A DNA stretch of 64,000 nucleotides, taken from positions 1 to 64,000 of the forward strand of contig QPMI01000530.1 in assembly GCA_004431415.1 (NCBI GenBank), read 5' to 3'. Both the position numbers and the translations under genes were made by a program. The DNA comes from Cyanophora paradoxa CCMP329. Lineage: Eukaryota > Plantae > Glaucophyta. This document shows, piece after piece, positions 2,402-53,254 of this stretch (position 1 is the first letter of the stretch; the number at the start of each line of letters is the position of its first letter). The notes beneath the pieces were generated by a model, which saw only the letters and a program-made list of their open reading frames with translations, did not search any database and was not told where the DNA came from.

Positions 2402-2850
2402 CATTATCCACCTGGAAGGTGCGTCGAATTCAATTCGTAAACAGGTGAATTCAGGGGGAAAGAGAAACCATACCTGGAGCTGGCGCGACGTGCATCGATA
2501 TTGTCCTAAGATCGTTCTTGGAATTCTCAGTTTCATTAAGAATCGCATCGCCGTCAGAACCGGCACGGGCTGAACGCCGGTCGCCACGATTGCATCCTGC
2601 TCCTGCTCCTTTGACGTTTCGAGATCGAATGCATTATCCACCTGGAGATGCATCACATTATATTCATATGCAAGTGAACTCGGGGGAATGATGAAAACCA
2701 TACCTGGAGCTGGCGCGACGTGCGTCGATATTGTCCATAAGATCATTCTTGGAATTCTCAGTTTCATTAAGAATCGCATCGCCGTCAGGAACCGGCACGG
2801 ACTGAACATCGGTTACCACTATTTCACGCTGCTCCTGCTGCTTTGTCCGA
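2402..2850. repeat. tandem duplication of a ~230-bp exon+intron unit (2 diverged copies)
   Basis: CATTATCCACCTGGA...ACCATACCTGGAGCTGGCGCGACG...GAATTCTCAGTTTCATTAAGAATCGCATCGCCGTCAG occurs from 2402 and again from 2632. Confidence 0.85.
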
Positions 2851-3436
2851 TCAGAATCTTCGACCAAGATCCAGCAGAAGTCCCAACACCGGCACACTCG
2901 CAGCTTTACCTGGGGCTGGCGCAAGCGACATCCAGCACGTCACTCTCAGTGTCTGCAGAGCCAGATTGGAATTCAGAGATCCAAACACAATCAACAATTT
3001 AAAAGCGGCCGCGCACCAGTCTTTGAAACCTCAAATCCGGCGCATTGCCTTCGGTACGAGCACGCTTCTGTTGGTCATCACCGACCGAAGCCGGAACAAG
3101 TCCGTTGATGTTGCCGCGGCCGTCATCCATCGCACGCTTTGTGATTGTAGGACCGCATTCGTCCTGATGCTGCCCTATCTTGCAAGCTACAGCGTGCTCC
3201 ATGAAAACTTGATTTCCGTTCTGGTCGGTAACCCGGACAGAGGTACAGTATAATTGGAGCGAGGGTACAGAGGCTATCTAATGCAAAACACCGTTACAGG
3301 TGAAATTCTAAAAAGCAGCGCGCTATAGCCCGTCTAAATTTAAAGTTCTGTCCAAGAATCCCGGCCAATTGCAAGTAGCAATTGCAAGTTTGTAGTAAGA
3401 CAGAGAGAGAACGACAATATTTCTGGAAATTCACCA

Positions 3437-17900: not shown

Positions 17901-18735
17901 GTGGCGTCCGGCCTGCAGCCGAACGTGCCGGCCGTCTTCTCGGTGGTGCCCCTCGCGCCGTCGGGCAGCCCGAGCGGCCCGGCCAGCGTGCAGGTGCCGG
18001 TGACGCCCTCGAGCGGCCTCGGCGCCGGGAGCCCGGGATCGGGCGCGGGCGCCGGAAGCCCCGCCGCCCCCTCGAACCTGCAGCTCACCAGCGTCTCGTC
18101 CGGCCTCATGGGCGGCACGTCCGCGACCCTCTCGTGGAGCCCGCCGGCTACCGGCGCACCGCAGAGCTACCAGGTCCTCAAGGACGGCGTCCCCGTCGGC
18201 AGCGTCTCGGGCAGCAGGACCTCGACGACCGTCTCGGACCTGCCGCGCGGCGGCGTCGCGACCCTGAGCGTCGTGCCCGTCGGCCCCGGCGGCGCGGCGG
18301 GCCCGGCCTCGGCCCCGCTCGCCGCCGGCATCCCGTCCGACCCGGCCTCGGAGCTCGTCCTCACCGCCGCGCCCGCCTCGAGCAACAGCGCCAGGCTCTC
18401 GTGGAGCCGCCCGCGGGGCGCGCCCTCTGGCCCGGCTCTCCGTGCGTTGCATTGCTGGTTTTTCGCGCGGATGGTTAGCGGCGCGAAACTGACGCGGCGC
18501 TCCCGCCGCGCGCAGGGCCTCGTACGCCGTCCTCAAGAACGGCCAGCAGGTCGCGACGGTGCCGGCCGGTGGCGAGACGAGCACCTTCGTGGCGTCCGGC
18601 CTGCAGCCGAACGTGCCGGCCGTCTTCTCGGTGGTGCCCCTCGCGCCGTCGGGCAGCCCGAGCGGCCCGGCCAGCGTGCAGGTGCCGGTGACGCCCTCGA
18701 GCGGCCTCGGCGCCGGGAGCCCGGGATCGGGCACG
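14918..18735. repeat. near-identical 689-bp tandem repeat, about 5.5 copies
   Basis: Units start TCACCGCCGCGCCCGCCTCGAGCAAC at 14918, 15607, 16296, 16985, 17673 and 18361. Confidence 0.97.
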
Positions 18736-20559
18736 GGCGCTGCAGCTCCGAGCCAGCAGGCACCCTCGAACCTGCAGCTCACTAGCGTTTCGGCGGGCAT
18801 CCTTGGCAATACGAGCGCCACGCTCTCATGGGGTCCGCCGGCGTCTGGCGCGCCAGCAAGCTATCAGGTGCTGCAAGACGGCAAGGTTGTCGCCACGGTG
18901 CCGGGAGGCCAGACGGCCACGAACGTCGGCGGGCTTCCCAGCGACGGTGTGTCCGCGACCACTTTCCAGGTCGTTCCTCTCAACGCGAAGGGCGCCGCGG
19001 GCCCCGCGTCGTTCCCCCTCTCGGCGGGCGCGGCGTCGTCGCTCGACTCCGGCATCAGCCTCACCGCCGCCCCGGCCTCGACTAGCGGCACCAGCGCCAC
19101 GCTCTCGTGGAACTCTCCGTCTGGCCCAGCGGCCGCCAATGTCTCCTCGTGCGCTTGAAATTTCTGATGCTCTTTTTACCAGAATCTCTCTTCCGAAAAG
19201 CTTACTCGTTCTCTCATGCGTGCTGGAGCAGGTTTGCCGTTATGCTCAACGGCCAACAGATTGGGACGGTGCCGGCGACGGGTGCCGCGAACAACTCGTT
19301 TGTGGCAGCGGGCCTGCAGCCCGGCGCCCCCGCCGTCTTCTCGGTGGTGCCGCTCTCGCCGTCGGGCAGCCCGAGTGGCGCTGCCAGCAACTCCATCCCC
19401 CTCTCCGGCTCGAGCTCCTCGCCTTCTTTCGGGTCGGCCTTCAATGGGGATGGCGCCTCGGCGGCTCCGGACGAGCAGGCGCCCTCCAACCTCAGCCTCA
19501 CTTCCTCCCCCACGGCGACGAGCGGCCGCGGGGCTTCCTCCGGGCGGCTCTCGTGGAAGCACCCGTCGGCCGGTCCGCCCGCCATGTACGCCGTTACAAA
19601 GGACGGGCGGGTCATCGGCACCGTTCCGGGGAGCCAGACGTCATTCAACATACCGGCGGAGCCTCCTCGGCCCTCGTCGCCTGGGGCGCCGATGGACGGC
19701 AGCGGCTCGGGGGCGGCGTCCAAGTACGTCGTGGTGCCCATGTCGTCCCAGGGCGCGGCCGGGACGCCGTCGTTCCCCCTCGTCGCTTCCCCGGCGCAGC
19801 CCAAGAACGGCGGCCTCAGCCTAACGGCGGCGCCGATCGTCCCCGACGCATCGGCGGCAGAGCTGACGTGGGACGCCCCCGCAAAGGCCCAGGAGATCAG
19901 CGGGTGCGCGAAATCATACTCTGCATAATTTCGGTAAATAAATTCGCAGCCTCCGATAATCAATTCCCTTGCGCAGTTACGCCATCATGGTGAACGGGCA
20001 GCACGCGGCGGTCGTGCCGCCGTCAGCCAGCGGGAAGAACTTGTACACGGCGACGGGCCTGCCGCCCGGCGCCGTCGTTGAGGTCGTTCCGATGCAGTCC
20101 GCCGCGACGTCACCCGGCTCGCGATCGGCCGCCGGCCCGAAGCCGGCGCCGAGCGGCGCGAGCCTCGCGCTCCCGCTGCTGAGCACAGGGCGCGGCGCGT
20201 CCACCTACTCCGCCACGACCGTCGCTACGGCGTCGGGGGCGCCCAGCACCGGCGCCCCCGCCGACCTCGAGCTCAAGGACCTCGACAGCCCGCCCTTCGG
20301 CAACACGACGGGCACGCTCGCCTGGAAGCACCCGGCGGCCGGGGCCCCCGCCTCGTACACCGTCATGCAGGGCGGGATGCCCGTGGCGACGGTGCCGGGC
20401 ACGCAGACCTCCTGCAAGCTCGAGAACCTGCCGTCCGGACAGGCGGTGTCGCTGCAGGTCATCCCGATGTCCGCGGGCGGCGCCCCGGGGCCCGCGTCGC
20501 ACTCTCTGAACGCCGTCTGCATCCCGTGCATGCTCGCCGCCATGCTCCAGGGGAAATAA
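14918..20559 (+). CDS. fibronectin type III-like repeat protein (5' end missing, 3' end disrupted)
   Basis: Repeated APSNLQLTSV...ATLSWSPP...SYQVLKDG...TS.TVSDLP...LSVVPV..GP.S domains; a 74-nt GTGCGT...CTGAC...GCAG intron per unit (first at 15000-15073) joins 615-nt exons in frame. Confidence 0.75.
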
Positions 20560-21440: not shown

Positions 21441-21789
21441 AGTGTCGCCTCGCTGGCCAGCGGAGGCGAGTGTCGCCGAGTTGGATGAGAGGATTCCCAT
21501 CCGGTGCAGCGTCCGTGTGGCCACGCACGGGCTGAGGCAGTAGCTGGGAGCACAATTGATCTGCAGCTATTCACAAGTGCACGTACAGGGATCGCGTACC
21601 CCCAGATGGGGCCGCGCCCGGCGCTAACTCAGAATACAGAGAGTACTAGAGCTAGCTGCTCGATAGCACTAGACTAGGGCTAGCGGCTACGCAATAGACT
21701 ACCGGCTAGCCTAGCCCGAGCGAATCGCGGCATGCGACAACTCCTCACTCTGCGTACGGTGCGTCCTCGCTCGGCGGGGGATAGGGGCG

Positions 21790-22107
21790 AGGGCAGCGAG
21801 GGGTACGGGCGAGGGCAGCGAGGGGAAAGGGCGAGGGCGGCTGGGGCCGTGGGTAAGGACGTGGGCGGCTGGGGCCACGGGTAGGGGCGTGGGCGGCAGG
21901 GGCCACGGGTAGGGGCATGGGCGGCAGGGGCCACGGGTAGGGGCGTGGGCGGCAGGGGCCGCTGGTAGGGGCATGGGCGGCTGGGGCCACGGGTAGGGGC
22001 GAGGGCGGCAGGGGCCACGGGTAGGGGCATGGGCGGCAGGGGCCATGGGTAGGGGCGAGGGTGGCGGGGGCCGCGGGTAGGGGCGTGGGCGGCAGGGGCC
22101 GCGGGTA
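21790..22107. repeat. 28-bp G-rich minisatellite (GGGGCCACGGGTAGGGGCGTGGGCGGCA), about 10 copies
   Basis: Direct inspection. Confidence 0.9.
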
Positions 22108-22241
22108 GTACGGGGGAGGGATGCCCGCCGCGAGCGGGGCCAACGCCGGGCCGGGCATGCCGCCGGCGCCCAGCGGCACGAAGCTCCCGCGAGGACGCGG
22201 GAGCCGTCGAGGAAGGCGGGCGGCGCGAGGCGGACGGGGCC

Positions 22242-26684: not shown

Positions 26685-29136
26685 ATGTCGCTTGACGAGC
26701 TCCCGCCGGAGCTGCTGCGCCACGTCGCCAGCTTCCTCCCCGTCCTCGACGCGCTCCGGGCGGCCCGGGCCTGCCGCGCCCTCGCCGACGCCGTCGAAGA
26801 GGCCGTGCGCTCCCTCGCTCACGCCGCCGAGAGCGACGCGCCGCCCGCGGTCGGCGTCCCGCGCTGACCGCTCCGCGGCGCAGACCTGGCGCTCCGCTGT
26901 CATCCCGACGCGCGAGGCCGGGTCGCTGTTGCTGCGCGGCGGCGAGTGCGCATGCGCGGCGCAGCGGGCGGGCGTCGCGCGCCTCGGGTCCCGCCTCGCG
27001 GAATCGGCGGAGGAGATCCTGATGCCGGGCTCTGAGTGGGCCGAGGGCGGCGAGCGGCGCGCGGCGGAGGAGACGCTGCAGACCCTCCTGCTCGCCGCGG
27101 AGCGCTGGCCGCGCCTCCGGCGGGTCGAGGCCTGCGCCGGCGACGCCGCCGCGGCCGCCCTCGCCGCCCGCTGCCCCGCGCTCGAGTCCTTCGTGCTCCG
27201 GGGCGGCTCCCCCGCGCCCCGCGCCCTCTCCGCCTCTCCGCTCTCCGCCGTCGAACTCCGCTGCGCCCGCCTGGCGCCCCTCGCGTGGCTCCGCGCCGCC
27301 TCGGCCCCCGGCGGCCCCGCCCTCTCCCGCCTGCTCCTGCACCGGGGGTACACCCCCGGCGACGAGGACGACGAGGAGGGGGACGAGGAGGAGGAGGAGG
27401 AGGAGGAGGAGGAGGTCCGGGGTACCGCCCTGCGCGCCCTGGCCGCCCGCCACGGGGGTACCCTGACTGGCCTCTCCCTCCCCCGGCTGCCCCGCGGGGG
27501 CGCCCCCGCCCTCTCCGCCCTCCTCCCCCGCCTGACCGAGCTCCACCTCGAATCCTCCCTCCACAGCCCGGACGGTGCGGTACCCCCCCCTCCACCCTTC
27601 GAATTCGATCCTCAATTCTTGGGCAGGGCGGCGCCGGGCATCCCGTACCCTCTCCCGGGCCCTTCGGGGCCTGCCCTCCCTCCGCCGCCTCTCCGCCTCC
27701 TGCGCCGCCGCCGCCGCCCGCGCCCCGCGCGCCTTCCGCCGCGGCAGCGTCCGCGTACCCCTCCCCGACCTCCTCGCCTTCCTCGCATCCGGGTTCGGGT
27801 CCCGCCCGGCCCCCTTTCGCTTTGCTCACGGTACCCCCCAGGGAGGGAATCGAGCGGCTCGAGCTCGAGGGACCCTTCCACTGCCCCGCGACCCGTGCGC
27901 TCGCTCTGAACTCCCGTACCCCCGCTCATGTAACCCGGTACCCCCTCTCCTCCTCGCAGCGGCGGGACTGGAGGCGCTCGCAGCGGTGCTGCGGCGGCAC
28001 GGGCGGTCCCTAGAGCACCTCGTTCTGCCCAAACTGTTCCTCGAGAACGAAGAGGAGGGTACGGGGTTCCAGCCCCGCGCCTAGCCGGGCGTCCAACCGC
28101 GGGGCCGCCAGGGGACGAGGACGAACGGGACGGGGCGACGTACCCCCCGCCCGCTTCGGCCCGCGCGGGCGCCTTCCTGGCCGCACTCCTTCCCCGCTGC
28201 ACGAAGGTACCGCGTACCCCCCACCCCGCCCACGGCCACTCACCGGCGCTCCCCGTCCGTCTGCCCCGTTCTCCCCCTCTCTTTGCCTTGCCCCCCCTCC
28301 CCCCGGCCCGGCTCCCAGCTTCGTTCGCTCTTTTCGGCATTTGGCGGCCGGGGCGAGGAGCTTCCGCGCGAGGTTCGCCGTACCCCCACCACGCTTTCCC
28401 CCCTGCCGCTTACCCCCTGCGGCAGGCCCGGAGATGGCGGTGGGGTCGCGACACGGGAGGCGGCTGGGAGGTACCCCCCCCACAACGCCGTCCCTGTACC
28501 CCCGTCAGCTCAGCGCCGCACAGGAAAGCGAGGGCTCCTCGTCGGACGGGGAGGGTCGCGATCCTGTACCCCCGCAGCCTGTACCCCTGGCCCCGGCGGC
28601 CCCGCCCCCACCGGCCCCGCCCCTGCCCGGCCCCTGGCTCGCGTCCCTACCCCCCTCCCTCGAAGCCCTCTCCGTTCGAGGCGTCCAGGTACCCCTTCCC
28701 TCTCCCCCCTCCCTTCCCTTCCCCCGACGTCCAGGACCAAGGTCCGCGCAGGGCGTAACCCCCTCTGACGTCTCCCGTCTCCTCTCATCCCGCCCCTACC
28801 TCCGACTCGCCCTCCGCCGGGTGCGTACCCCTCCTTCCCCGCCCCTTTCCGTTCACGATCTTACGCCCCTGTACCCCCAGATCGAGCTTGCGAGCGCCTA
28901 CGAGGTGGGGGCTTGGAGGGAAGCCTCTGCGGCGCGGGCCCCCCCGGCCGCCCTCTACGAGTGCGACTCGGTACCCCCCCCTCTCCAACCCCCAACCGAC
29001 CGTACCCCTCTGACCCGGTACCCCCGAGGGCGAGGGCCTGCTGGAGTGCGCGGACGTGTGCAGGGGGCTCGGGGAGGGGGCGGGGGCCGGGGAGGCCCTT
29101 GCGGAGGGCGGGCCTGAGCTTCTGTACGTCATGTGA
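26685..29136 (+). CDS. F-box/LRR protein, multi-exon
   Basis: MSLDELPPELLRHVASFLPVLDALRAARACRAL is a classic F-box; intron 26805-26883; RCPALESFVL, LTGLSLP and LPRLTELHL are LRR-like; ends ...ELLYVM* at 29136. Confidence 0.8.
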
Positions 29137-30109
29137 TCTGAGATGTCTGAGGCGGCGGCGCTGCCGCCGCCATGGCTTCTCGTGCTCCTGAGGCATGCCC
29201 CCGGGCCCCTTTCCTGTTCATGAGTTGCGAGAAGAAATTTGCTTGGATAGGTCCGGCCAGGCATGCGCAGGAAGGGGTTTGCCGCCCTCCCCGCGCGCTG
29301 CTGTTTCCAGCGGCTCGGCCGGGCCGCTCCTGTGAGCAAGTGCCGGTGCCAGTCTGAAAGCCGGAGCGAGTGGCGGTGCCAGTCCGAAACTTCGCCAAGT
29401 TGAAAGCCAATTGCAAAGCCTTGCAATTGAAGGCGCCCAAACGGCCCGGCAGCCTCAGGGCCCGGGTCTATCTCTCTCCATTGCATGAATGTGTCCTCCG
29501 ACTGGCGGTCGGGCCGGCGGCTGAGCTCGAGTCTTAACATGTACGGCAGAAGCTTTATGAGAGCGCAGCCTCATGATCAGGAGTCATGATCATGAGCCAG
29601 CGCCGCTGCACTTGAGCGCGAGCGCAAGAGAAGAAAGCACTAGCCGCCACCGCGATTGATGACAATTTGCAATGACAGCTTCAGCGACTCTCGGCCTTCG
29701 ATTCCTCGCGGGCTTTGAGTACCCATTTTATTAGCGCTTGCACAGCGCTTCAGCTTAAACTTCTAATTCCGGTGTTGAAGTTGACCTTGTGCATTGCAGT
29801 TTCAACGAGCCATGACATGCGAGTTAATGTCTACGTATACGCCTCACACTACCTGAGAATCTGATGCTCTACGTAAATCACTCTACAGATCTATAGCTAA
29901 AGCTCATTATAAAAGCTAATGCGAACACCTTTGCCTTCAAGGCTTCCTGATGAGTCTGCGGCGAAGTATAAAACGTTCCTTTGTGAAATCCTGCTAAAGA
30001 GTAATTTGAAACGACCACCGTCCGGCTGCAAATACAGAGTTGAGGTGTTTTATTGTCTGGTCAATGAAGAAGAATCCATGCAATGATCCAAAAAGAAAGA
30101 AAGAAAGAA

Positions 30110-30400
30110 AGAGCTCGAGGTGCTCTAAGGAGGTCGCCCGCACCACGCCGCCGAAGATGAGAGCCCCCAAGTTCGTAGGCGCGGCGAGCGCCGCGTCGCC
30201 CTCGTGCAGCCGTCCGAGCTCGCGGTCCTGCTCGCCCGGCGCGGCCGGCGCCGCGGCCGCGGACCCGGAGGCGTCCCCATACACAGCCTGAGCGTCCCCA
30301 CCCTTGAGGTTCCGGCCCGGCCGGAACCTGAGCCACTGGGCCGTTGCCATGCGGCTCCGCCATGCGGATTCCTAACGGACGCGCGGCTGACCAGCTAGGG
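30110..30400 (-). pseudogene. decayed paralog of the small gene at 52560-53254
   Basis: GDAALAAPTNLGALIFGGVVRA versus GDAALAAPTSLGALLFGGVVRA; the downstream exons are absent. Confidence 0.65.
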
Positions 30401-41187: not shown

Positions 41188-42582
41188 GCTATAGCTATAG
41201 CTAGCGCTAGCGCCGCTAGCTATAGAGATCTAGTAGATGGCTAACTTAGAAAGTTAGCGTGCGCTAGCGCTAGCGCTAGCGCTACTAGACTAGCGCCTAG
41301 TAGTAGTAGCTAGCTATATAGCGCGCGCTAGCGCTAGCCTAGTAGCGCTAGCGAACATTCGCCGAGTCGGTTCGCAGAAAGTACCGAACTCGGCCCTATT
41401 GATATGTACGACTTGACCCCCTTCCGAAGTTCGGAACCCAGCCTGAGTCAGTCCTCCACTGCTGGCCACGTGCTGCCACGCGTACGGTGCTGGGCCAGTC
41501 TGGAGTCTGGACTCTGGAGTCTGGACTCGGAGTCTCGGAGTCTCGGTCCCTCGGACTGCCCGCGGCCGCGGCCGCGCGCGCCCGACGCGCTGGGCGGCCT
41601 GGGCCGGCGCCGGGCCGCGCTGATCGAGCAGCCGATCGCGACCCGGTGACCGACAGTTCGATCCGGAACTTTCTGAATCCGAACTCCGCAATCGGAAAAT
41701 CTGAAATCCGAAGCACTGCGGCCCGGCGCCGGCGCCGGGCCGGCGGGCCGGGCGGCATCAGGGCCTGATTCAGGGGCTCCGAACTGGGATCCGGAACTTC
41801 TGCTGACTCAGTGAGTCTGCTCCACCTACCTTTTTTTTTTGCCAAAGCCCATATCAAGGGCAGGACGATTGTATTAGTTCAGTAACTTTATCGTACGCAC
41901 TACCGGTTCGGAATGGGCCGAACTCTGGGTCAGAGCATAACCTGAGGCCGGGACACAGGGATAGGCGCTTCGACGCTACGGCTGAGCGTTTCTCTTGTAG
42001 GGGGGGAGCGTGGTAGGGGACCGTTGTTGAGAGATGTAGATGCGGGAGCCGTAGCCCCTAGGGGGCCTTTGTTGAGAGTGTAGAGGCGGGAGTCGCGGCT
42101 CCAAGGGGGCCCTTCTGGGGAGGCGGGGGTAGGGAGGGGGGGGGAAGGGGTGGGGGCGGCGCGGGCGAGGGTAGCGGGCGCGCCCCCTTATTTTTATTGT
42201 GCGTGGGGCGCGGGGGGTGTTTATGAGCCCGAGGGGGCGGGCGGTGGCGGGCGGGGTGGCCGCCCTGGTGGGGTCGTGGGAAGGAGGGGCGTGGTGGAGG
42301 CGGAGGCCGCGGGGCTAGGCTGTCGCTAGCGTTCGGGCCAGGGGGAGTGCTTAGGAGGGTGGGGCGGGCCCGCGGGCGGGCAGGGCTTTTCGCGAGGGCG
42401 GGGTAGGGGGGTGTCATTGCTTCATAGAGCTATCTAACTCAGAAAGGGAGGGCGGTGGGCGTTCATAGCGCCCCCTCCGTCGGCAGTCTGGCTACCGTAA
42501 ATCGTGGTAAAGAGAATAAAGAAAGCGGAGGCCGAGGCGGCGAGGGAAGCGGGGCCGCGGGGGCCTACAGAAAAGAGAAAAT

Positions 42583-42808
42583 CTACGCTGCCGCGTTGTC
42601 GGCGGCGGCCGCCCGGCGGCCTGCCAGGAAGGCCTCGACCGCGGCGGGGCCCCCGAGGGCCGAGGTGAGCTCGGCGAGCACGCGCTGGGCCGCCTGGTAA
42701 TTGGTGAGCGAGATGGTAGCCGGCCCGGGGCCGGGGGCGGGGGCCGGGCCCGGGGCAGGCGCGGGCACGGGGGCGGCGGCCGCGGCCGGCGCCGGGGCGG
42801 CGGCGGCA

Positions 42809-42839
<31 letters not shown>

Positions 42840-44762
42840 CGGCGGCGTCGGCGGCGGCGATGGGGGCGGCGGCGGCGGCGGGGGCGGCGGCGCCACCCTT
42901 GCGCTTCTTGAGGGCGTCGGGGCCGAAGCGCTCGATGGCGCGCTTGCGCGACTGGGCGGCGATGTCCGCCGCGATCTGGGCAGCCTCCTGGGGGGTCTTG
43001 TCCTCGTTGAGGGCGCTGAGGCGGTTGAGCCGGCGCGCGCCCGTGGAGTGGCCCTGGCGGTAGGAGGCGCGGCCGCCGATCCCGTCGGGGTAGTTGATGC
43101 GGTGCTCGCGGGTGATCTTCTTGCTCTTCTGGGTGGCCTCCAGGGCCACCGAGTCGGGGTAGAGCACCTGCCGCCCGGGCGTGGGCCGGCGGGCGGGGTA
43201 CCGGGCCGGCGGGCGGGGTACGAAGGTTGCCTACCTCCTGCTCCTCGCCCTCGGAGTCGTCCGAGTCCGGCACGGGCTCCATTTCCTTGCCCAGGACGGC
43301 GATGTTGTCACCGTCGCGCTTGAAGCGGCGGGGCTTGTCGGCCGTGAGGTTCACGGTCTTGATCTTGTCGTCGACGATGGCGGGCTCGAGCCAGACGGAC
43401 TGCGCGGGCAAGCCCGGGCGTGGGTGAGGGAGCCGGGGCGGGGCGCTTGGTTTTAGGTTCCTTTCCCCCATAGGGGGGGGGCGAAGGGCCCGAGGCGCGG
43501 GGCCTTCGCACCCGGGACATCTCGGCGAGGGCGTCCTCGGTGTACACCCCCGGGATGTCGCAGAAGATGCGGTAGGACCAGCCCAGCTCGCGCTGCTCCT
43601 CGGTGAGGCCGGCGTAGACCGCGTGGCGGCTCGCGACGGAGAGGTCCTGGCAGAGGCGAATCTGCACGCGCGCGCGCGGGCTTAGGCGCGCGATTGCGAG
43701 GCGAGTCGGAGGCAGACCTTCAGCTTGCGGTGCTCATGGCCGAGGGCGAGCTCGACCATAGCGAGGCAGCCGCGCGAGTCGGGGAAGCGGGCGCGCAGGT
43801 CGCGGTTCATGGACATGGAGATGTCGACGTCGGTGAGGTGGACGAGGGCCACCTTCTTGTAGCGGCCGATGAGGTAGACGTCGGCCATGACGTCGCGGAT
43901 CCGCTCGAGCCAGCCGAGCTCCTCGAAGGTCCGGTGCGCGAGGACCGTGAGGTAGTCCGTGCGCAGCGTGCCGTCGCGTTCGACGAGGTCCGGGAACTTG
44001 GTGAAGTCCACGCCGTCGTCGAGCTTCAGCAGCTTGTTGAACTGCGCCCGCGATTCGGGTATGGCGTTGAGCGCGGCCCGCGCGGTGCGCGATAGGGGTG
44101 CGCGCACCATCTCCTTCTCATAGAGGATGGCGTTGTCGGCCTTGACGGACGACAGGACGAGAGTGCGCTTCGATTTGTCGACGAGCACCTTGCCGCGCTT
44201 GGTGACACGGGTCGTGGCGCCGTTCGGCAGCGGCTTGGGTGCAGGGAGCGGCGCCTGGCGAGGCGACTGCTGCTCCTCGTCCTGTTTTTATTCGAGGCGT
44301 TATGTGGCGCGCGCATGAGAGGGGCGGAGCTTGCCTGGGCATCTTCGGGGGCCGGAGCTGGCGGGGCGGCCGTCGTGGTCTTTTTCTGCGACCTCGGCGA
44401 CGTGCGCTTCGGCTGGGCGGTCCCACGCGGGCGCCCGCGGCCCTATTGGCGGCGTCTGAGCTGCGGGCTCGACGGGGCCGGCGGCCAGGGGCGCGTACCG
44501 ACTTGGGCTTCGCCGAGCCGGACCCGGACGGGCCGGCCACGGCCGGCGGCGGCGGTGGCGGCGCCTGCGCGGCCTGCTTCTCCTTCAGCCTCTCGCTGGG
44601 CTTGGGTGGGGCCTGGAAGGCCTGGTGCGCTTGCTTCGGCGGTGACTTGGGCGGCGAGCCCGCGCGCGACCCGGCGGCGGCACCGGCGGGCTTCAGCGTC
44701 TTGGTCGGAGACGAATGCCGGGCGCCGTGCACGAGGAAGGGCATGATCGGAACCGCGGCCAT
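42583..44762 (-). CDS. 7-exon, predicted 589-aa protein with an AT-hook, an unknown globular core and an Ala-rich tail (inside the retrotransposon)
   Basis: Exons 44762-44499, 44442-44335, 44281-44108, 44041-43718, 43661-43512, 43399-43235 and 43167-42583 splice into one open frame; five GT-AG and one GC-AG intron; KPKS|GRGRPRG AT-hook. Confidence 0.8.
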
Positions 44763-44892
44763 GGTGGCAGAGGTCGGTCTTGGCGGGAGTGACTGCGAGG
44801 TCCCCGGTATGGGGGTCCCGGGGGAAATCCGGGCTATGATTGGGGATCGGGTACCCCTCTTGGGGGGGCGAGGGCCAATTTGCATCGGTGCG

Positions 44893-45568
44893 ATGGCGGA
44901 TCTGCCGGAGGAAGCGCTGGGGCGTGGCGCGCCGGCGTCTGCGGAGTGCAAGCGGGAGCGTAGCGATAGCGACTCGTCCGCCGACGAGCCAGCGGCGAAG
45001 CGGGCGGCTGTCGAGGGTGACCGCGCAGCAGCTGCGCCGGCCTCTCCGGTCAGTGGCGATGGGGTGGCTCTGAGCGGCTTTGCCGATGATGTTCTCGTGG
45101 CCGGGAGCCCCAGCGCGCAGCCTGGTGAGGTCGTGCCTGCGGACTTCCCGATGTTGAGGACACTCCGCGGCCAGCTTCGCGCCGCGGCGGCGATGTTCCG
45201 CGATGGCGAAGTCCGGGCGTATTTCTATGAGTTGCCCTATCCCGGCTGCACCCAGGTGCCGAAGAAGAGTACGCTGGCGTTTTACGCAGTGCGCAACGGA
45301 CTCCGGCCCGGGATTTACTCGATCTGGTGCGCAGTTGCGCCTGATGCATTGATCGCGGCGGATTTCGTGAGCGCTTATGACACCATATCGCCTGCTTCGG
45401 CGGGGGCCGTCTTTGCTCGTCTTCTGCAGGGATCAGACGGCGACCTATCCGGGGCGGCAGTGCGCCCTGGCCCAGGTGTGGCGGGTGCCGGGAGTTCGGG
45501 GTCGGGACTCCCGGCGCTTCCTCACCATCGATCAGGCGATGGATTTCTTGGTGCGCGCCTGGTCGTGA
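44893..45568 (+). CDS. 190-aa protein with a C-terminal RNase H1 hybrid-binding / caulimovirus viroplasmin (Cauli_VI-like) domain and no RNase H catalytic domain
   Basis: Removing intron 45327-45429 (GTGCG...CTGCAG) gives FYAVRNGLRPGIYSIWDQ...CALAQVWRVPG...SRRFLTIDQAMDFL, matching the FYAV..G..PGIY..W..C..QV...PG....F.T..EA..FL consensus. Confidence 0.85.
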
Positions 45569-45714
45569 CCCGCGCGCGCACCTTCTCCTCCGGCTGACGG
45601 CTCTCGCGCGGTTGCAGGAGGGTGATGGGACCGCTGCTAGCGGGCTGGAGGCGATCGAGCACTCTCGGCCAGCAGGGCTGAAATGCCCGTGGGAGTGAGG
45701 GAGGCGTACTCGCT

Positions 45715-48700
45715 TCACTCGTCGGAGGCGCTGTCGGAGTCGGATTCCGGCTGCGGGTCGAGGAGGGGCCCGCGGGCGAGAGTAGTCTCAGCTTCAGAGC
45801 GGTGTGCTGTTGCAATGAAGCCGTCTGCTGTCCAGAGTGCCCGGGGGGGCGCATGCACATTCGGCGCCGTGCTCTGGGGGGCGTCGGGGTCGGCCGGCTC
45901 CCAGCTCCAAGCAACGGTGTCGGGGTCTAGGGAGGGCTGCGCGGCGTCCTGGGGGAGGCCGCGGGCTGTGAGTTCAATCTTGCTCTGCTCGAGGAGGACT
46001 CGGGCCCAAACCGCTCGCTCAAAGGCGCGCCATATCGTCGTCTTGGTGACTCGCTGGGGCGATCCGGCGGGGTTATCCGGGGCGTGGTCCTGGAGGGTTC
46101 GGGCGTGGGCGGACCACGCCGCGCTGATCATGAGGCCGGCGAGCGCCGCGAGCAGGGAGCGGGGCATGCGAAATTCGCGCCTTTGGCGGGCGGAGCCGGT
46201 TTGGCGTTTCTGAGCGTCGTCGGGGACAGCGAGGAAGCCGGTGAGGGCGTGCGCGCAGTCGAGGGGGATGGAGGTCCCATAGTAGGTGTTCCATCTATCG
46301 AGGAGCTCTTCCCAGGCCCCGCGCGCTGGCTCGCAGTAAAATATTGCATGGTCGGATGTATCCGGGGGGACATCAGGGCCGGGGCAGGCGCAGCAGTACG
46401 GGGATGGGCGGGCCCCGATTTGGAAGAGAAAACGGCCGGCGGGGAGGCACGCGTGAGTGGCCCAGAGCCACGTCTCGCGGTTCCAGGGGGAGAGGTGGGC
46501 GTGTTGCGTGCCCGTACGCCACACCTGGGTCCAGCACTTGCCGGGGGGCGGGGGGCCGAAGCGGGCGAGGGGGCCCGGTTCGGGACGGGCGGGTTGGGCT
46601 CGGAGGGCGCGGTAGCCGGCCGAGATGCGGTATTGGAGCCAGGGGCGGGGCCCCGCCGGGGTCCTGTAGAGGAGCCCGGCGTGAATCCAGGGCGCGCGGT
46701 CGAGGCGGCCTGCCGCGACGGTGCGGCCGTCGGGCCAGCGGGTTTTTTGTTTCGCTGAGCCCGGGGGAACGGCGATGAGCAGGGCTCGGGGCAGGAGCGC
46801 GGGGGCGGCTGGGAGGGGCTCCGGGGGGGCTGGCGGGCCGAGGACGGTGCCGTCGGGGAGGGTGGGGGCTAGGCAGCCCTGCGGCGGCTCGCCGGGAGAC
46901 GCAAAGAGGATCCTCCCGGAGTGTGGCCGTCTAGGGCCGGAGCCCGCACCTGCCGGGTCGGCGGCGAGCCAGATCCGGGGGTCGATCTCGGGGAGGATGG
47001 CCTGGGGGGGCGTGTCGATTGGGGCGAGGCCGAGTTGGGTGGCGCGGAGGCGGACCTGAGCCCGGATTTCGTTCAGGCGCGTGTACGCGGCCGGGTTGAG
47101 GTTCTGGGGCGCGGGGCCCGTGACCTGGTGTACGGCGGCTAGCTTGGTCGCTAGGGCGTCGTCAAGCTTGCCGGTGCCCCACTGGTCCCCTGGCGGGGAT
47201 AGTACCGGGTTGAGCCAGAGCGGTTCTGCCCGGAAGCGGTCTCGCGTGAGCGGCAGAGATGTAACTGCGCGGTGCGGTGGGCAACGCAGAGGGAGCGGGC
47301 CGGACTCCGGCGGTCGGAGGAGCGTGAGGGCGCGCACCGCTGGCGCTAGGGGGCCCTGCATGGGGAGGAGAGAGGCGTACGAGCGGAAACGGAGCTCGGC
47401 GCCCAGTGCATTGAGGCCGAGCGCTCGTGCTGCTGCCGCGTACTTCTTCGGGACTAGCTCCGGCATCTCCTCTGCGGCGAAGAGTTTCCATAGCGCGAAG
47501 GAGGGATCGCAGAGCGCGCGGATGTACGTGCCTGCTTGGGCGAGGAGGCGGCTCTCCACGTCAAGCGCGCCGAGGCCACCGTGTGACGGCGGGAGGACGG
47601 CCTTGGCACGCGAGATCCGGCCGCGGGCTGTGCGTTTGCTGGGGGACGCCTCTGCCGAGGGTGGCCAGATGGCCGCCCAGTATTCATCCTTGATGGCCCG
47701 GAGCGCCGCAGGGGGGCAGGGGAGGAAAGCAGCCGCGTACATGTTAACTGATGCGACGATGGCCGTGGCTACGTAGACCCGCTGGTGAACACGCATCGCT
47801 CGTAGATTCCAGCGTGCCCTGCGGCTGCGCATCCCGTCTACACGCTTGGCCCAGTAAGGGTTGGCATCGAAATCGCCGCGCGGGCCTAACGGGATACCTA
47901 GCGTGGACGTGGTCTTGACCCAGCGGATCGGGATCGTTTGGGTCCATTCGGGAAGAGTCGTTGGCTTGCCTGGTTGTTTGGGAGGTGCTGCTGCACCGGC
48001 GAGCATGCCTTCGGTTTTGCTGAGATTGAGCGAGGATCCGTTGTAGCGGCCCGCCTTCTGATACTTAGCTATGGTTTTCTTCACCGGGAGACCTGGGTCG
48101 GGGCTGCGGGGGTTGATCTTGAGCGAGTGCGCTGCGTCGTCCGCGTATTGGACCAGCTTGGATTCGAGCCGGGGCTCTTTGGGGGTGGGTACGCCGGTAA
48201 TTTCCGGGTCCGCGAGGATGTCGCGCGTGGTGGGTTCTTGCTGAGTGTTAAAGAACATACATGCGAAAGGATCGCCCTGGAGCGCGCTGCGCGTGACAGG
48301 AATAATGATGGGGTAGATGGTACCGTTGATCATAACTTTTGATCGTGCGCCCTTCGTGATGGCGCGGACATCCGCCAGGAATTCAGGCGGGAAGCCTTGA
48401 ACGGCGAGGACCCGGAGTGCGTACAGGTGCTCTACGCGGTCATAAGCTTTCTCGAAGTCAGTATTCAGGATTACTACATGTTGATCCGTGCGGTTCGCGT
48501 GTCGGATAACCGCCTGCATCTGCCAAACATTATCTGAGCCGTTGCGGTCTTGCATGAACCCCGTTTGGACGGAGCTGATCGTGTGCTGGCAAGCGGGCGC
48601 GATGCGCTTTGCCAAGACCGCCCGAGGAGGCGGCGGTCTATCTGCAGGAGTGTGATAGGCCTCCAGTTCTGGATCTTATCGCGGTCGCCCTTTTTGTAGA

Positions 48701-50722
48701 GGAGCTGGATAAGCCCCGTCCGCTGGCGCTCAGACAGGATTCCAAGTGCGCGCGCGCAGTTGTAGCTTTCCGTGACTAGGGGGCCGAGGACGTCCCAGAA
48801 CTCTAGATAGAATTTGACTGTGAGGCCGTCCTCGCCCGGCGCTGTCGCTTTGTTCATGTCTCTTAGGCACGCCTCGACTTCGCCGACCGTATAGGGGGCG
48901 CGCATCGGGGGGTGCAGGGGCGGGGGCGCTGTATCTAGGCAGCGGGAGAGGAGCTCCGCCTCTTCGTGGGAGAGGGGGTCGGCTGGCGTGAGGAGATGGG
49001 CGGCTCGCAGCTTGGCGACGACTGCCGGGAAGGCGTCGGCTGCCGCCGGCGTCACGTCCACGGGGCTCGAGGCTCCGGGATCCGGATTCGGGCGAGCGCC
49101 ATCTGGCTCAGACCCCGGTGCTTGCGGGTTCGGCCAAGCCGTTCCCGGGAGCGGGCGAGCGCCATCTGGCTCGGACCCCGCGGGGCGTCTGGGCGAGCAG
49201 GTGAATGCTCATGCGCCCGCGCAGGAGGAAGCCGCGGCGGTGCCGGCGGGTCTTGGCCGGGGGGGTCGGGGGGGAGCGGGCGCTGGGCGGCGAGAAGCTC
49301 CGTGTAGTACGCGCAGGCGATCTCCGCGATGCCCGCCTCCGACGTAGCCGCGGGGGTACCCTCGCTCGGGGGGTACGGCTGCAGCGAGCGCATGTGGTTA
49401 TCAGCCGAGGAGTACTTGATGTGGCGCGCTAGGTCCGGGGGGACGGCGTGCGCATGAGCGAGAGAGCGTTCTAGGTGTTTGCGTGAGCTTAGGGCGGCGT
49501 CCGCGGCGTCGAGCGCTGCTTCCTGGACGGCTAGGTAGCCCATGTCGGCGACGGCATAGTCTTCTTCGGTAGTGTCCACTTCCGCGTCCTGGAGCGCTTG
49601 CTCTGCGTCGCGCCATAGGCCTGCGATCGACTCGCGCGCATCGCGGATTGCGGAGTCAGCCTGAGGGCGGGTCCGGCGGGCTATCTCCCTGTACTCGGCG
49701 AAGAGGTCGTCTAGCCAGGCTTGCCAGGCTGCGGTGCGGAGGGGCGGCTGCTGCGGCAACGCGACTGCCGTGCGCGCCCGTACCGCCTGCTGGAATTGGG
49801 GGTGTTGGAGGACGCGGTCGAGAAGCCGGAAGCGCGCAGCGCGGGGCTTGATGACGGCGTCGGTGTGGAGACGCGCGTACACTGCGTCATGGTCCGGGCG
49901 CGGGGCCGCGCCCGCTGTGCGGAGGACGCCGACGCGTTCCGCCGCGACGCAGAGGTCGGCGGACAGGAAGACGTGGTCGAGGCGCGCCGCGTTCTGGTCG
50001 AAGCGGTTTGTCTTGCGGTGCCAGCGCGTGTAGATGCGGTCGCGCGGACGCCTGCGGCGATGCTCATCAAACAGGTCGAGGTCGGCCATGAGCGCGGCCC
50101 AGTGCCCGAACGGGGGCGGGGCGCCGGCGCGGCGTCTGCTCTCGAGGTGCGGGGTCGCGTATGCGTTCAGGTCTCCTCCGAGGATGAGGGCGTCGCTCGG
50201 GGGGAGGTTGAGTGATTCGATCGCTTGGGTGACACCTGCCGCCGTGCGCTTCTGCGACGCCGCATCGTTCGGCACGTAGATACAGGCTATAGTGTACGAG
50301 TTAACGTCGCTGGCGAGGCGCAGGACCGTGGCGTCATGCGGCTTTAGACCGGGCGTGGGTGGGAGGGGCACGAGGTCTGCGGTGGCGCCCGGCAGGGCCG
50401 GGATGGTCTTGCGAACAAGGAATCCGGTTCCTCTGCTCCAGACATTCGGTTTGAGCTCTGCGGCGGGCGGAATGAGCACCCGCCAAGTAGATTCGATGCG
50501 CTGTGTAAGAGAGGCGATCTGCTTCGGGCGGAGCCGGTGGTCTATGATGCCCAGAACGTCTACTTTGGTGCGCTTGAGCCACCCGGTGAGCCAGATGCGG
50601 CGCGGTATGCCTGCGAGGCTTTCAACATTCAAAAAGGCGACCGTAAGCAGCGGGCGGGGCGTCGGGGCGCCCGGGGGCGCGTCCGACGGGGCCGCCGTCG
50701 TGTGAGCTGGTCTATCTGGCAT
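45715..50722 (-). CDS. L1/Tx1-type ORF2: AP endonuclease, reverse transcriptase and C-terminal CCHC finger; two frameshifts (about 49060-49280 and about 48615)
   Basis: APE motifs FLNVESL, IYVPN, GGDLN, RLDHVF, PDHDAV; RT motifs APGEDG, NWRPITLL, QTGF, DFEKAYDRV, QGDP, YADD, LNLSKT; zinc finger CCAC...HAIFYC. Confidence 0.97.
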
Positions 50723-51242
50723 GAGACCGCGTCGGGGCTGCTGGGGTGTGCTGGTTGTCGAGTTTGGTAATGCTGGGCTACTGGGCGTCGGCCGCGCGAG
50801 TTTTGGGACCAGCCACGTGCAGTGCTAGCGGGCACCCGCGTTAGGGAAGCCCCACTGCGCCGGCTTACTCGCTCGCGGGCCTTCGCTCAATTTTCCGGGG
50901 TACCGGAATCGATCCAATTTAAGCATTCCTACATGCATGCCTGCTCCACCTACCTACATAGTACATACCAGTATGTTATGATATGTAGTGCGCCAAATCA
51001 GCCTCTCAGGCTGGTCTCAATTCTGACCGAAGGGAAGAAGAGACCAGAGGCTATACTGCCGACTTCGGATCCGTAACCATCGAGCAGTACCATCACTATC
51101 GAGGTTTTTTGGTAGTAGGTATGAAGTGAATGAGTGTTATTGACCCTGGCGTAGATATTGACCCTTGGCTGCTGCCCCCCCCCCCCCCCCCCCCGGCCTC
51201 ACCCCCCTCCCCCCCCCCCCCCCCCCCCCCCCGCCCACACTG

Positions 51243-51896
51243 CTGTCAGCTCAGCCCCGCGCAGGAGAGCGAGGGCTCATCGTCAGATGGGGAGGGTCAC
51301 GGGGAGGGTCCACTGTCCCTCCCTGTACCCCCGGCCCCGCCGGCCCCGCCCCAGCCGGCCCCGCCCCTGCCCGGCTCCTGGCTTGCGTCCCTACCCCCCT
51401 CCCTCGAAGCCCTCTCCGTTTGAGGCGTCCAGGTACCGGTACCCCTTCCCTCTCCCCCCTCCCTTCCCTTCCCCCGACGTCCAGGACCAAGGTCCGCGCA
51501 GGGCGTAACCCCCTCTGACGTCTCCCGTCTCCTCTCATCCCGCCCCTACGTATACCTCCGACTCGCCCTCCGCCGGGTGCGTACCCCTCCTTCCCCGCCC
51601 CCTTCCGTTCACGATCTTACGCCCCTGTACCCCCAGATCGAGCTTGCGAGCGCCTACGAGGTGGGGGCTTGGCGGGAGGCCTCCGCGGCGCGCGCCCCGC
51701 CGGCCGCCCTCTACGAATGCGACTCGGTACCCCCCCTCCATCCCCCCGCACGAACATACCCCTCTGACCCGGTACCCCCCAGGGCGAGGGCCTGCTGGAG
51801 TGCGCGGACGTGTGCAGGGGGCTCGGGGAGGGGGCGGGGTCCGGGGAGGCCTCTGCGGAGGGCGGGCCTGAGCTTCGAATTCTGTACGTCATGTGA
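51243..51896 (+). pseudogene. 5'-truncated copy of the F-box gene 3' end
   Basis: Near-identical to about 28503-29136; CGA>TGA nonsense change at 51421 and small insertions. Confidence 0.85.
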
Positions 51897-52559
51897 ACAT
51901 GACCCGCTGAGTCACGGCTTCACCGGCTGGCCGAGGCTCGGCGCCGGCCACAGCGCTTCAAATTTGATTTCCGATACCGAAGTTAACCTTGTGCATTGCA
52001 GTTTCAACGAGCCATGACATGCAAATAGTCTAGTATGTCTATGAGTGCAGTATATCTGTGCGAATCTATTACTGTGCTCTACTTCAATTACTGTGCGAAT
52101 CAATAGCTAAAGCTAATGAAGAGATCAAATTCGAACGGCGTTGCCTTCCGGATCCTAGTGAATCTGTAGCTAAGAGTGAGAGTTTCCGAGTTCCTACATG
52201 TGTGAAAATCCTGTCTGAAACGACCACTGTCCGGCTGCAAATTTAGAGCGGAACAGCCTGCAGGCTGCAGCAATATTGATAGACCAATATTTAATTGATT
52301 AGCAGTTTACGTATTAAGGTGCACTGCAATATGAATAAAAAATTCCTCCCGCGGAGTCCGCGCGAACCGTCAAAAAATCAATACACCCAATCCGACGCTT
52401 ACTTAGTTTCTAACCAGAAGATCTCAAACGAGATCTTTCAGGTCTATCTCTCACGACGTTTTCTAAAATGTATTCTATGGCAGACATCATAAGAATATCT
52501 TCTCTAAGATTCAACTGGAAGCGGCAGACATGTAAATGTAGATAGAGGTAAATGAAACG

Positions 52560-53254
52560 GAAGAGAGAGAGAGCGCTACAGCACAATTGTCCTTGTGCCC
52601 GAGCCCCGAGGCGGCGGTGGCCGCTCTAGCGCGGCGGGGGCGGGCGACGGCAGCGACGAGCGGCGGCCTACATATACCTCGAGGCCAGCCGCGGGCGGCG
52701 GCTGAGGCGGCGGCGCCGAGGGCGGCGGGGGCGGGTCGGCGGGAGCGGCGGCGGCGCCCACGCGCTCCTGGGCGAGCTCGTGCAGCTCCTGCTCGTCGTC
52801 CTCCTGCGCCGGGCGTGAGAACATAGCGCGTGAAAGGCCGTACGCGGCTGCAGCTCGAAATAGAGAGCCTCGGAGGCGTTCTATGGCATCGATCACAGCT
52901 CAAGGCCGCAAGCCAAGGCCGCCCGCACCACGCCGCCGAAGAGGAGAGCTCCCAAGCTCGTGGGCGCGGCAAGCGCCGCGTCGCCCTGGCGCAACCGTCC
53001 GGCCTCCTGCTCGCGCCCGCCCGGCACCGGCGCGGCCGCGGCCGCGGGCCCGGAGGGATCCACATACACAACCCGAGCGTCGCTGCCCCCGGCGCCTGTG
53101 CCCGCACCGGGGTTCCGGCTCGGCCGGAACCTGAGCCGCTGGGCCGCTGCCAGGCGGCTCCGCCAGAAGACCTGCGCCAAAGGGCCCTGGGTTCAGCGGA
53201 CGCTCGAGGGGCCGGCTCGGTGAGTAACCGACTGCAAACAGCACGACTCGCCAT
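52560..53254 (-). CDS. small multi-exon gene of unknown function
   Basis: ATG at 53254; exons LAQVFWRSRL...LGALLFGG, NASEALYFELQ and EDDEQELHELAQER are separated by GT-AG introns; the 3' end is uncertain. Confidence 0.45.

Follow-up and report, generated by a model that had tools for sequence, protein, structure and literature searches.

A young LINE insertion of Cyanophora paradoxa encloses two spliced genes downstream of ORF2

Results

A 9.1-kb insertion with the footprint of retrotransposition

The locus described here lies in a 64,000-nt stretch of genomic DNA of the glaucophyte Cyanophora paradoxa, referred to below as the window. In this sequence, two exact copies of a 14-bp target site duplication (TSD) flank 9,110 bases that terminate in A10 on the minus strand (Table 1). 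The 14-mer occurs only these two times in the window, against a chance expectation of 0.01. Read 5' to 3', the element consists of a leader, ORF2, an antisense gene with an HBD-like product (RNase H1 N-terminal, hybrid-binding), a sense AT-hook gene, a tail and the poly(A) tract. A first-pass annotation, made from the sequence alone, had proposed the direct repeat, the poly(A) end on the reverse transcriptase (RT) strand, a 218-nt leader, a 130-nt divergent intergenic region and a 3' tail of ~740 nt, and all of these were confirmed.

Table 1. Features of the insertion, in window coordinates.
Feature	Position	Strand	Remarks
TSD copy beside the poly(A) end	41817..41830	.	exact 14-mer, twice in window
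Poly(A) tail	41831..41840	-	T10 as read, A10 on RT strand
Non-coding 3' tail, 742 nt	42582-41841	-	between AT-hook stop and poly(A)
Sense 7-exon gene; product an orphan of 589 aa with a single RGRP AT-hook	42583..44762	-	RNA contigs
AT-hook gene exons	44762-44499, 44442-44335, 44281-44108, 44041-43718, 43661-43512, 43399-43235, 43167-42583	-	introns all phase 0
Region between two divergent ATGs, 130 nt	44763..44892	.	ATGs at 44762 (-) and 44893 (+)
Antisense 3-exon gene, 211 aa, HBD-like (RNase H1 N-terminal, Cauli_VI)	44893..45698	+	RNA contigs
Antisense gene exons	44893-45326, 45430-45550, 45618-45698	+	GT..AG joints
ORF2: APE endonuclease, RT, putative C-terminal Cys/His motif	45715..50722	-	three frames as assembled
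Non-coding 5' leader, 218 nt	50940-50723	-	stops in all three frames
TSD copy at the element's 5' end	50941..50954	.	exact 14-mer

Runs of at least six A or T are confined, across the whole element, to the poly(A) tract and positions 46743-46748. No terminal repeats of at least 60 nt were found at the element, and LTRs are absent. A BLASTN search with the element and its flanks detected neither a further copy nor a paralogous empty site in the remainder of the window. The insertion is a genuine, young LINE of C. paradoxa, of the APE type and L1-like, and, because it has one TSD and one A tail, the entire 9.1 kb was integrated by a single event of target-primed reverse transcription. In composition, the target site is not T-rich.

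ORF2 is assembled in three frames and ORF1 is absent

The Pfam searches identified Exo_endo_phos on residues 45-265 of the first ORF2 piece (24.6 bits, cut-off 24.5, E 2.5e-5), a family also matched by the paralogues P0004, P0005 and P0007, and RVT_1 (49 bits, E 7.8e-13). The zf-RVT match is weak: the window's ORF2 piece and the paralogues score 14-17 bits, where the cut-off is 27.5, and a C..C..H..C pattern is readable in the translation. In the PDB, the top match of ORF2 is human L1 ORF2p (44.8 bits), marginally above the R2 RT (39.6). Seven ORF2 paralogues are present in C. paradoxa, at 51-97% identity, including P0005-P0007, which represent the ORF2 lineage at 82-90%. The paralogues begin at the same Met region, and the ORF2 stop falls within one codon of that in the 51-61% paralogues.

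The single APE-RT-zf ORF and the intact frames reported in the first-pass annotation do not hold for ORF2 as assembled. In the minus-strand ORF listing it falls into three pieces, each in a different frame (50722-49052, 49061-48474 and 48615-45715), and the coding segments as assembled are 50722-49052, about 49193-48621, and 48618-45715. The frame shifts thus lie near 49193-49280 and at 48619-48620, and paralogous proteins are continuous across both the linker and the second break. As many as 79 combinations of GT/GC..AG intron ends can restore the frame at the first break, so that a test for an intron there is without power; since the paralogues read the linker as coding, comparison with them makes an indel more likely than an intron. 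Given the two breaks, this copy may be dead, or mis-assembled at homopolymers. RNA contigs additionally remove four segments from ORF2 (47652-47740, 47472-47531, 47226-47337 and 47002-47055), that is, cryptic introns.

All three frames of the leader contain stop codons and, therefore, no ORF1 remnant; ORF1 is absent from the element. The nearest relatives outside Cyanophora, the metagenomic L001 and L002, encode a canonical ORF1 of 489 or 641 aa immediately before ORF2. The ORF1s of distant relatives show no similarity to P0011, a paralogue of the AT-hook protein.

Two spliced genes diverge from a 130-nt region

Both introns of the antisense gene have GT..AG ends and are supported by RNA contigs, 45327-45429 in X15, and 45551-45617 in X15 and X17. 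By way of the second intron the gene extends past 45568, so that the gap of 146 nt previously placed after ORF2 shrinks to 16 nt, between the antisense stop TGA (45696-45698) and the ORF2 stop (45715-45717). The antisense mRNA runs on antisense into ORF2, to at least 45823, and the antisense strand of ORF2 serves as its 3' UTR. The gene had been annotated as an antisense gene for a hybrid-binding domain: the RNA contigs bear out the antisense, spliced gene, and the domain is matched below threshold and in one exon. Specifically, Cauli_VI (PF01693) is matched in exon 1 only, with scores of 20.0 and 16.6 bits that fall short of the gathering score of 21, over profile positions 2-20 and 2-15 of a domain of ~44 residues. 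The HBD-like motif is split by intron 1, and its second half was recognized by eye in exon 2, which on its own has no Pfam match.

The seven-exon structure of the sense gene proved correct: all six intron joints, with GT/GC..AG ends, are present in RNA contigs of two studies (X15 and X17). The exon lengths total 1770 nt, that is, 589 codons and a stop, and the exon-wise translation is open. The AT-hook core is a single motif, RGRPRG, at the start of exon 2, with GRGRPK at the same place in P0011. Upstream, RNA contigs extend the minus-strand gene to 44805, and the plus-strand gene begins by 44926. Both inner genes are transcribed from the 130-nt divergent region, presumably a bidirectional promoter.

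The AT-hook mRNA ends near 42400 (RNA contigs begin at 42398 and 42409), about 570 nt short of the element's end. Below ~42400, the tail has scant RNA-contig coverage. Many DNA contigs contain this part; those from other copies depart from the element at 42401, and 42005-42151 and 42448-42581 are missing from variant forms. An Rfam search of the element returned no match, and the final 135 nt of the tail have an unremarkable fold (z-score -1.56). At position 41952, the window has G and every overlapping contig has A.

The AT-hook gene belongs to an orphan family

Two diverged paralogues of the AT-hook protein were identified, both from C. paradoxa: P0011 (60-96% identity per exon) and P0012 (about 68%, without the N-terminal half). 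No homologues outside Cyanophora were found among 1.84 billion representative proteins, and exon 4 retrieved a single match from this set, namely P0012 (E 7e-4). A protein search with the 168-aa ORF around exon 4 also returned nothing, which is uninformative given that its length limits left out proteins of 589 aa. Pfam yielded no family for any AT-hook exon or for P0011, the PDB sequence search with the AT-hook protein gave only low-complexity noise, and a metagenome scan with P0011 recovered no relative. An AlphaFold model of P0011 residues 118-470, built from a 6-row alignment, had a mean pLDDT of 41 and was unusable; an ESM Atlas feature search linked the protein to fungal clusters at 0.90, with few shared features, and provided no lead. 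P0011 is encoded on tig00000137 and P0012 on tig00020734, and neither contig contains any of the seven annotated ORF2 paralogues. Judging by these sequence comparisons, the AT-hook genes are a multi-copy orphan family specific to Cyanophora, not a single-copy host gene.

DNA contigs retain the introns and point to truncated copies

The six introns of the sense gene and the two of the antisense gene are spliced out in RNA contigs and never in DNA contigs, and no intron-less copy of either gene was found among the DNA contigs. Both inner genes are spliced by the cell, yet the RNA that served as template had kept its introns. In each of two independent DNA data sets, X1 and X10, contigs covering 43783-45333 and 45305-46567 run across the AT-hook/HBD and HBD/ORF2 junctions without a mismatch. 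Contig joints and loose ends near 44525-44563 and 42170-42307 were set aside as unreliable, these being proline/GC-rich low-complexity sequences.

The 3' exons of the AT-hook gene recur together with the tail in DNA contigs that are nearly identical and apparently truncated at the 5' end, and contigs with these exons and the tail outnumber those with the ORF2-HBD part. One of them, from X10, departs from the element at 43218, inside intron 6, into unrelated, AT-richer sequence, which fits a 5'-truncated copy that retained the intron. Position 47548 is A in RNA contigs of two studies and G in the window, and X1 DNA has both. The RNA contigs with A join ORF2 at 47204 to AT-hook exon 7 at 43001 through a non-canonical joint, and in both DNA runs the contigs are interrupted at 47202-47231. 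The break points and this one RNA joint fit a putative second copy, internally deleted and transcribed, that would link ORF2 to AT-hook exon 7.

No second full-length locus with RT, HBD and AT-hook genes was seen among the contigs: those with at least 95% identity over 43939-44336 and 44735-45132 were the window's own only. The window differs from near-identical copies at five positions (2 synonymous, 3 conservative), too few to judge selection.

Discussion

A proposed integral three-gene LINE and its alternatives

The evidence supports a single retrotransposition in which ORF2 moved together with the antisense gene, the sense gene including its introns, and the tail. We consider an integral three-gene LINE the best reading of the locus, with a probability of about 0.5. 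The two inner genes had been proposed to be an accessory module that travels with the element, as opposed to a one-off 3' transduction. In favor of this proposal are the single retrotransposition of all parts, the lack of an internal poly(A) or LINE 3' end, and the multiple copies of the AT-hook gene; the signs of recurrence are indirect (truncated contigs, tail variants and the joint of ORF2 to exon 7 from another copy), and no second full-length locus with its own TSD was seen. The integral reading is further favored by the mismatch-free junctions, the native position of the ORF2 stop and the leader devoid of ORF1; weighing against it are the two frame breaks in ORF2, the sub-threshold HBD match and the location of P0011 and P0012 on contigs without an annotated ORF2 paralogue.

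Under the integral reading, the HBD-like/AT-hook pair would be a regular 3' module of a LINE lineage, and a rare, unspliced read-through RNA, starting at the 5' end of the element and finishing at its terminal poly(A) site, would be the transposition intermediate. With such an intermediate, copies truncated at the 5' end or deleted internally would still contain AT-hook exons along with the tail. The basic AT-hook protein might act as the nucleic-acid-binding partner, the role of ORF1p in canonical L1, and the small HBD-like protein might bind the RNA:DNA hybrid formed in reverse transcription; both functions are purely conjectural. More tentatively, the element could represent an autonomous LINE lineage in which ORF1 has been replaced by a downstream, divergent two-gene cassette with its own promoter and spliceosomal introns, encoding an orphan AT-hook protein and, antisense, a stand-alone RNA:DNA-hybrid-binding protein. 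Such a lineage would propagate through unspliced read-through RNA and would be the master of putative RT-less, intron-keeping gene retroposons.

The strongest alternative, though a less likely one, is a one-time chimera, in which read-through of adjacent insertions or template switching joined a single-ORF LINE to an RT-less, gene-carrying retroposon (the AT-hook gene and tail, either alone or together with the HBD gene). The family norm would then be ORF2 directly followed by a tail, and the composite would exist in this copy and perhaps a few descendants. The excess of DNA contigs with AT-hook 3' exons and tail over those with the ORF2-HBD part is in line with such an origin, as are the P0011 and P0012 contigs without an annotated ORF2; with its own promoter and poly(A) site, the AT-hook gene could be an independent RT-less retroposon. 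However, the inner junctions carry no remnant of a poly(A), a TSD or a LINE 3' end, the native ORF2 stop lies only 16 nt from the antisense stop, the antisense mRNA draws its 3' UTR from the antisense strand of ORF2, and the probable second copy also connects ORF2 with AT-hook exon 7. The DNA contigs further suggest, weakly, that truncation points are scattered and that the copies do not share a fixed 5' end. The chimera stays a rival because no second full-length copy was seen.

A 3' transduction, whereby a LINE upstream of two host genes was read through into both and the RNA was retrotransposed once, appears improbable. It would account for expressed, intron-bearing genes between ORF2 and poly(A) within one TSD, and ordinary C. 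paradoxa genes often have convergent UTRs that overlap (PMC6704402). However, the A tail and TSD of the source LINE would be expected after ORF2 and are not there: 41841-45714 contains no A or T run of at least 6 and no LINE 3' end remnant. Also at odds with host genes, the AT-hook gene is a multi-copy orphan without a homologue beyond Cyanophora, and its truncated copies are joined to a high-copy retroposon tail. Least credible of all is an assembly artefact, with the 14-bp match and the gene order produced by mis-joined repeats: the tail is repetitive, the two ORF2 frame breaks lie at or near homopolymer runs and are possible consensus errors, and the window stands alone at 41952, but two DNA contig sets of independent origin, one of 2019 and one of 2024, provide overlapping, mismatch-free cover of 43783-47231, the exon structure agrees with the RNA contigs, the exact TSD adjoining A10 is the expected footprint, and the 2019 gene model P0001 has an identical ORF2 C-terminus.

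Comparison with known elements

LINEs are typically compact and intron-free, with ORF1-ORF2 or a single ORF, and L1/Tx1 elements normally consist of ORF1-ORF2 and a short 3' UTR. The Cyanophora element shares with canonical L1/Tx1 LINEs (human L1, L001 and L002) the N-terminal APE, the RT, poly(A), a TSD of ~14 bp, apparent 5' truncation and, putatively, the C-terminal Cys/His motif. Unlike these elements, it lacks the upstream ORF1 present in L001 and L002, has about 3.9 kb after ORF2 with two separately transcribed, spliced genes, and occupies a target that is not T-rich.

Mammalian L1 is known for 3' transduction and for chimeric retrogenes that arise via template switching. Such products likewise have non-LINE sequence between ORF2 and poly(A) within one TSD; by contrast, the Cyanophora element lacks both an A tract and a LINE 3' end in its interior, its cargo is an orphan gene that exists in multiple copies and is fused to a retroposon tail, and the introns have been kept. 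Penelope-like elements retain spliceosomal introns, too. Spliced antisense transcripts are described for Drosophila TART (PMC1636488). These parallels, introns that survive retrotransposition in one case and spliced antisense RNA in the other, come from other clades, whereas the introns of the Cyanophora element reside in separate accessory genes 3' of ORF2 and, cryptically, within ORF2. Dinoflagellate SymbioLINEs carry a DNA methyltransferase (cited in PMC12344493) and are APE-type LINEs with an additional protein function as well; in contrast, the Cyanophora cargo is a pair of independent genes, one in antisense orientation, that have a promoter of their own.

Implications

To our knowledge, the mobile elements of glaucophytes are almost undescribed. 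The 2019 C. paradoxa genome paper reports that LINEs account for 2.47% of the genome and contains nothing further on LINEs (PMC6704402). An element that is mobile as a unit and includes separately promoted, spliced genes implies that the RT uses unspliced nuclear RNA as its template, and that a LINE is able to hold a gene cassette, much like some DNA transposons. If the integral reading is true, the cassette would provide a candidate non-homologous substitute for ORF1p, and the element would be the first LINE shown to have recruited a hybrid-binding protein.

Insertion footprint and ORF2

An exact 14-mer direct repeat, with two occurrences in the window against 0.01 expected by chance, encloses 9,110 bases, and its left copy runs directly into T10, read as A10 on the minus strand. 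The repeat of 14 bp around 9.1 kb with poly(A) on the RT strand, claimed in the first-pass annotation, is thus present, and this perfect target-site duplication (TSD) and poly(A) end are the footprint of target-primed reverse transcription (TPRT). The insertion was generated in one TPRT event whose 9.1-kb RNA template was unspliced. Within the tail, position 41952 is G in the window, and every DNA and RNA contig covering the site has the A found in the high-copy tail; the G is either a private change in the window copy dropped by the contig builder or an assembly error. A dispersed repeat of about 1.8 kb (28504-30303 and 51245-53088, same orientation, 82-98% identity) has one copy beginning 290 nt past the 5' TSD and does not extend to the insertion site. 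Other repeats in the window are a 689-bp unit in six to seven tandem copies (14918-19388, 96-100% identity) inside a block of 65-77% GC and an array of about 10 copies of a 28-nt unit (21771-22164).

ORF2 comprises about 1,670 codons that are open except for two breaks. The single APE-RT-zf ORF proposed earlier is in three frames as assembled. Pfam places Exo_endo_phos in the first of the three pieces; the last has RVT_1 along with a weak zf-RVT. Across the ORF2 region, seven C. paradoxa paralogues (51-97% identity) can be aligned. Three of these, P0004, P0006, and P0007, run uninterrupted across the break at 48619-48620 and are coding across the Pro-rich linker at 49280-49193; given this continuity at both places, both breaks look like 1-nt-type frameshifts. 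The breaks are located at or near homopolymer runs and could be either genuine mutations or errors in the consensus. In paralogues with 51-61% identity, the stop is displaced by no more than one codon. Among the protein hits, which bear the EukProt name EP00741_Cyanophora_paradoxa, the paralogue P0001 (tig00021015_g17151) has a C-terminus identical to that of the window ORF2. The variable APE-RT linker also contains, beside the first frame break, a tandem duplication (49090-49180, minus strand) that reads SEPDGARP twice in the paralogue-supported frame.

The leader is 218 nt long, as previously described, and contains stops in all frames, so that no truncated ORF1 is found in it. In contrast, the closest relatives from outside Cyanophora, at 24% identity, carry a canonical ORF1 immediately 5' of ORF2, namely, 489 aa with a weak zf-CCHC at 393-1862 of a TARA ocean scaffold (L001) and 641 aa at 1420-3345 of a JGI metagenome contig (L002).

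Coordinates of the features of the element
Feature	Position	Strand	Source
14-mer direct repeat	41817-41830, 50941-50954
T10	41831-41840
AT-hook exons	44762-44499, 44442-44335, 44281-44108, 44041-43718, 43661-43512, 43399-43235, 43167-42583	minus	RNA contigs
HBD-like CDS (211 aa)	44893-45326, 45430-45550, 45618-45698	plus	RNA contigs
HBD-like gene introns	45327-45429, 45551-45617	plus	RNA contigs
ORF2 coding region	ATG 50722 to stop 45715-45717	minus	ORF listing
ORF2 pieces	50722-49052, 49061-48474, 48615-45715	minus	ORF listing
ORF2 introns	47652-47740 (89 nt), 47472-47531 (60), 47226-47337 (112), 47002-47055 (54)	minus	RNA contigs

Transcription and splicing of the inner genes

Logan contigs were mapped on 41750-47700 from two DNA runs, X1 (2024) and X10 (2019), and two presumed RNA runs, X15 and X17, from two different studies. 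Joints that skip introns and have canonical ends occur in X15 and X17 and in neither DNA run, which identifies X15 and X17 as RNA-derived. Both inner genes are divergently transcribed and spliced.

The AT-hook gene has the seven sense exons reported initially: all six introns, each in phase 0, are confirmed by RNA contigs, and the exons, whose borders were set after allowing small joint shifts in contig mapping, are each open in frame, for a total of 589 codons plus stop. Its mRNA contigs extend upstream to 44805 and end near 42400, which places the gene's own 3' end about 570 nt short of the element end. An RGRP AT-hook core opens exon 2 and is conserved in the paralogue P0011 (tig00000137_g8148; 569 aa, same architecture, 60-96% identity per exon); a second paralogue, P0012 (tig00020734_g13600; 273 aa, about 68% identity), starts within the equivalent of exon 4. 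The protein is an orphan, with no Pfam family, no PDB relative, no useful lead from an Atlas search, and, among 1.84 billion representatives, a single match, a Cyanophora fragment; its structure model (pLDDT 41) is unusable.

The antisense gene is likewise spliced, and its assignment to the hybrid-binding domain (HBD) is weaker than originally proposed: Cauli_VI scores 20.0 and 16.6 bits against a cut-off of 21, over the first 15-20 profile positions and in exon 1 only, and after splicing, a stretch of exon 2 resembles the domain's second half. RNA contigs reduce the supposed 146-nt gap between the CDS and the ORF2 stop to 16 nt, and the transcript extends antisense into ORF2, at least to 45823. 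There, an X17 contig continues with 25 letters absent from the window (plus strand, GT at 45823-45824), which could reflect either another splice, into a remote exon, or chimerism of the contig.

Four introns with GT/GC..AG ends, their summed length a multiple of three, are also removed within ORF2. The paralogue P0003 is coding without interruption across this region, and the splicing of the LINE transcript here is cryptic.

A proposed single mobile unit and its alternatives

We assign a probability of about 0.5 to an integral three-gene LINE. A composite that arose once as a chimera is a less probable origin. Counting against a single unit, no annotated ORF2 paralogue is found on the contigs carrying P0011 and P0012. 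In its favor, the element lacks the internal A tract and LINE 3' end that a chimera of two RNAs should leave, with no A or T run of at least 6 in the element beyond the terminal tail, save one within ORF2. The same absence counts against 3' transduction of host genes, which is improbable. An assembly artefact is the least credible explanation, because mismatch-free contigs in both DNA runs (43783-45333 and 45305-46567) span the AT-hook/HBD and HBD/ORF2 junctions.

Signs of additional copies count in favor of the integral-LINE reading. No intron-removed forms occur among the DNA contigs, and one X10 contig, departing from the element at 43218, in intron 6, into unrelated AT-richer sequence, fits a 5'-truncated copy with the intron kept. 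Tail variants in DNA contigs (skips of 42005-42151 and 42448-42581, divergence at 42401), together with summed contig depth that increases toward the 3' end, hint at many short copies, and no more than hint, since contig depth is not copy number. Position 47548 is A in RNA contigs of both studies and G in the window, with both variants in X1 DNA; as C. paradoxa is probably haploid (PMC6704402), two loci are favored over two alleles. The RNA contigs with A-47548 have 47226-47337 spliced out and then join 47204 directly to 43001 through a non-canonical joint, and contigs of both DNA runs break exactly at 47202-47231, the figure for the upstream contig being roughly double that for the downstream contig. 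Taken with the probable haploidy, these observations point to a probable second, transcribed copy that has ORF2 and AT-hook exon 7 together, with a 4.2-kb internal deletion. Counting against the integral-LINE reading, no contigs other than those of the window itself cover, at 95% identity or above, the HBD gene, the ORF2 C-terminus, or the AT-hook gene in its 5' half.

The observation in the first-pass annotation is largely right and its interpretation plausible and partly supported. In an integral three-gene LINE, the transposition intermediate would be a rare unspliced read-through transcript, the AT-hook protein may act in place of ORF1p, and the HBD-like protein may act on the RNA:DNA hybrid.
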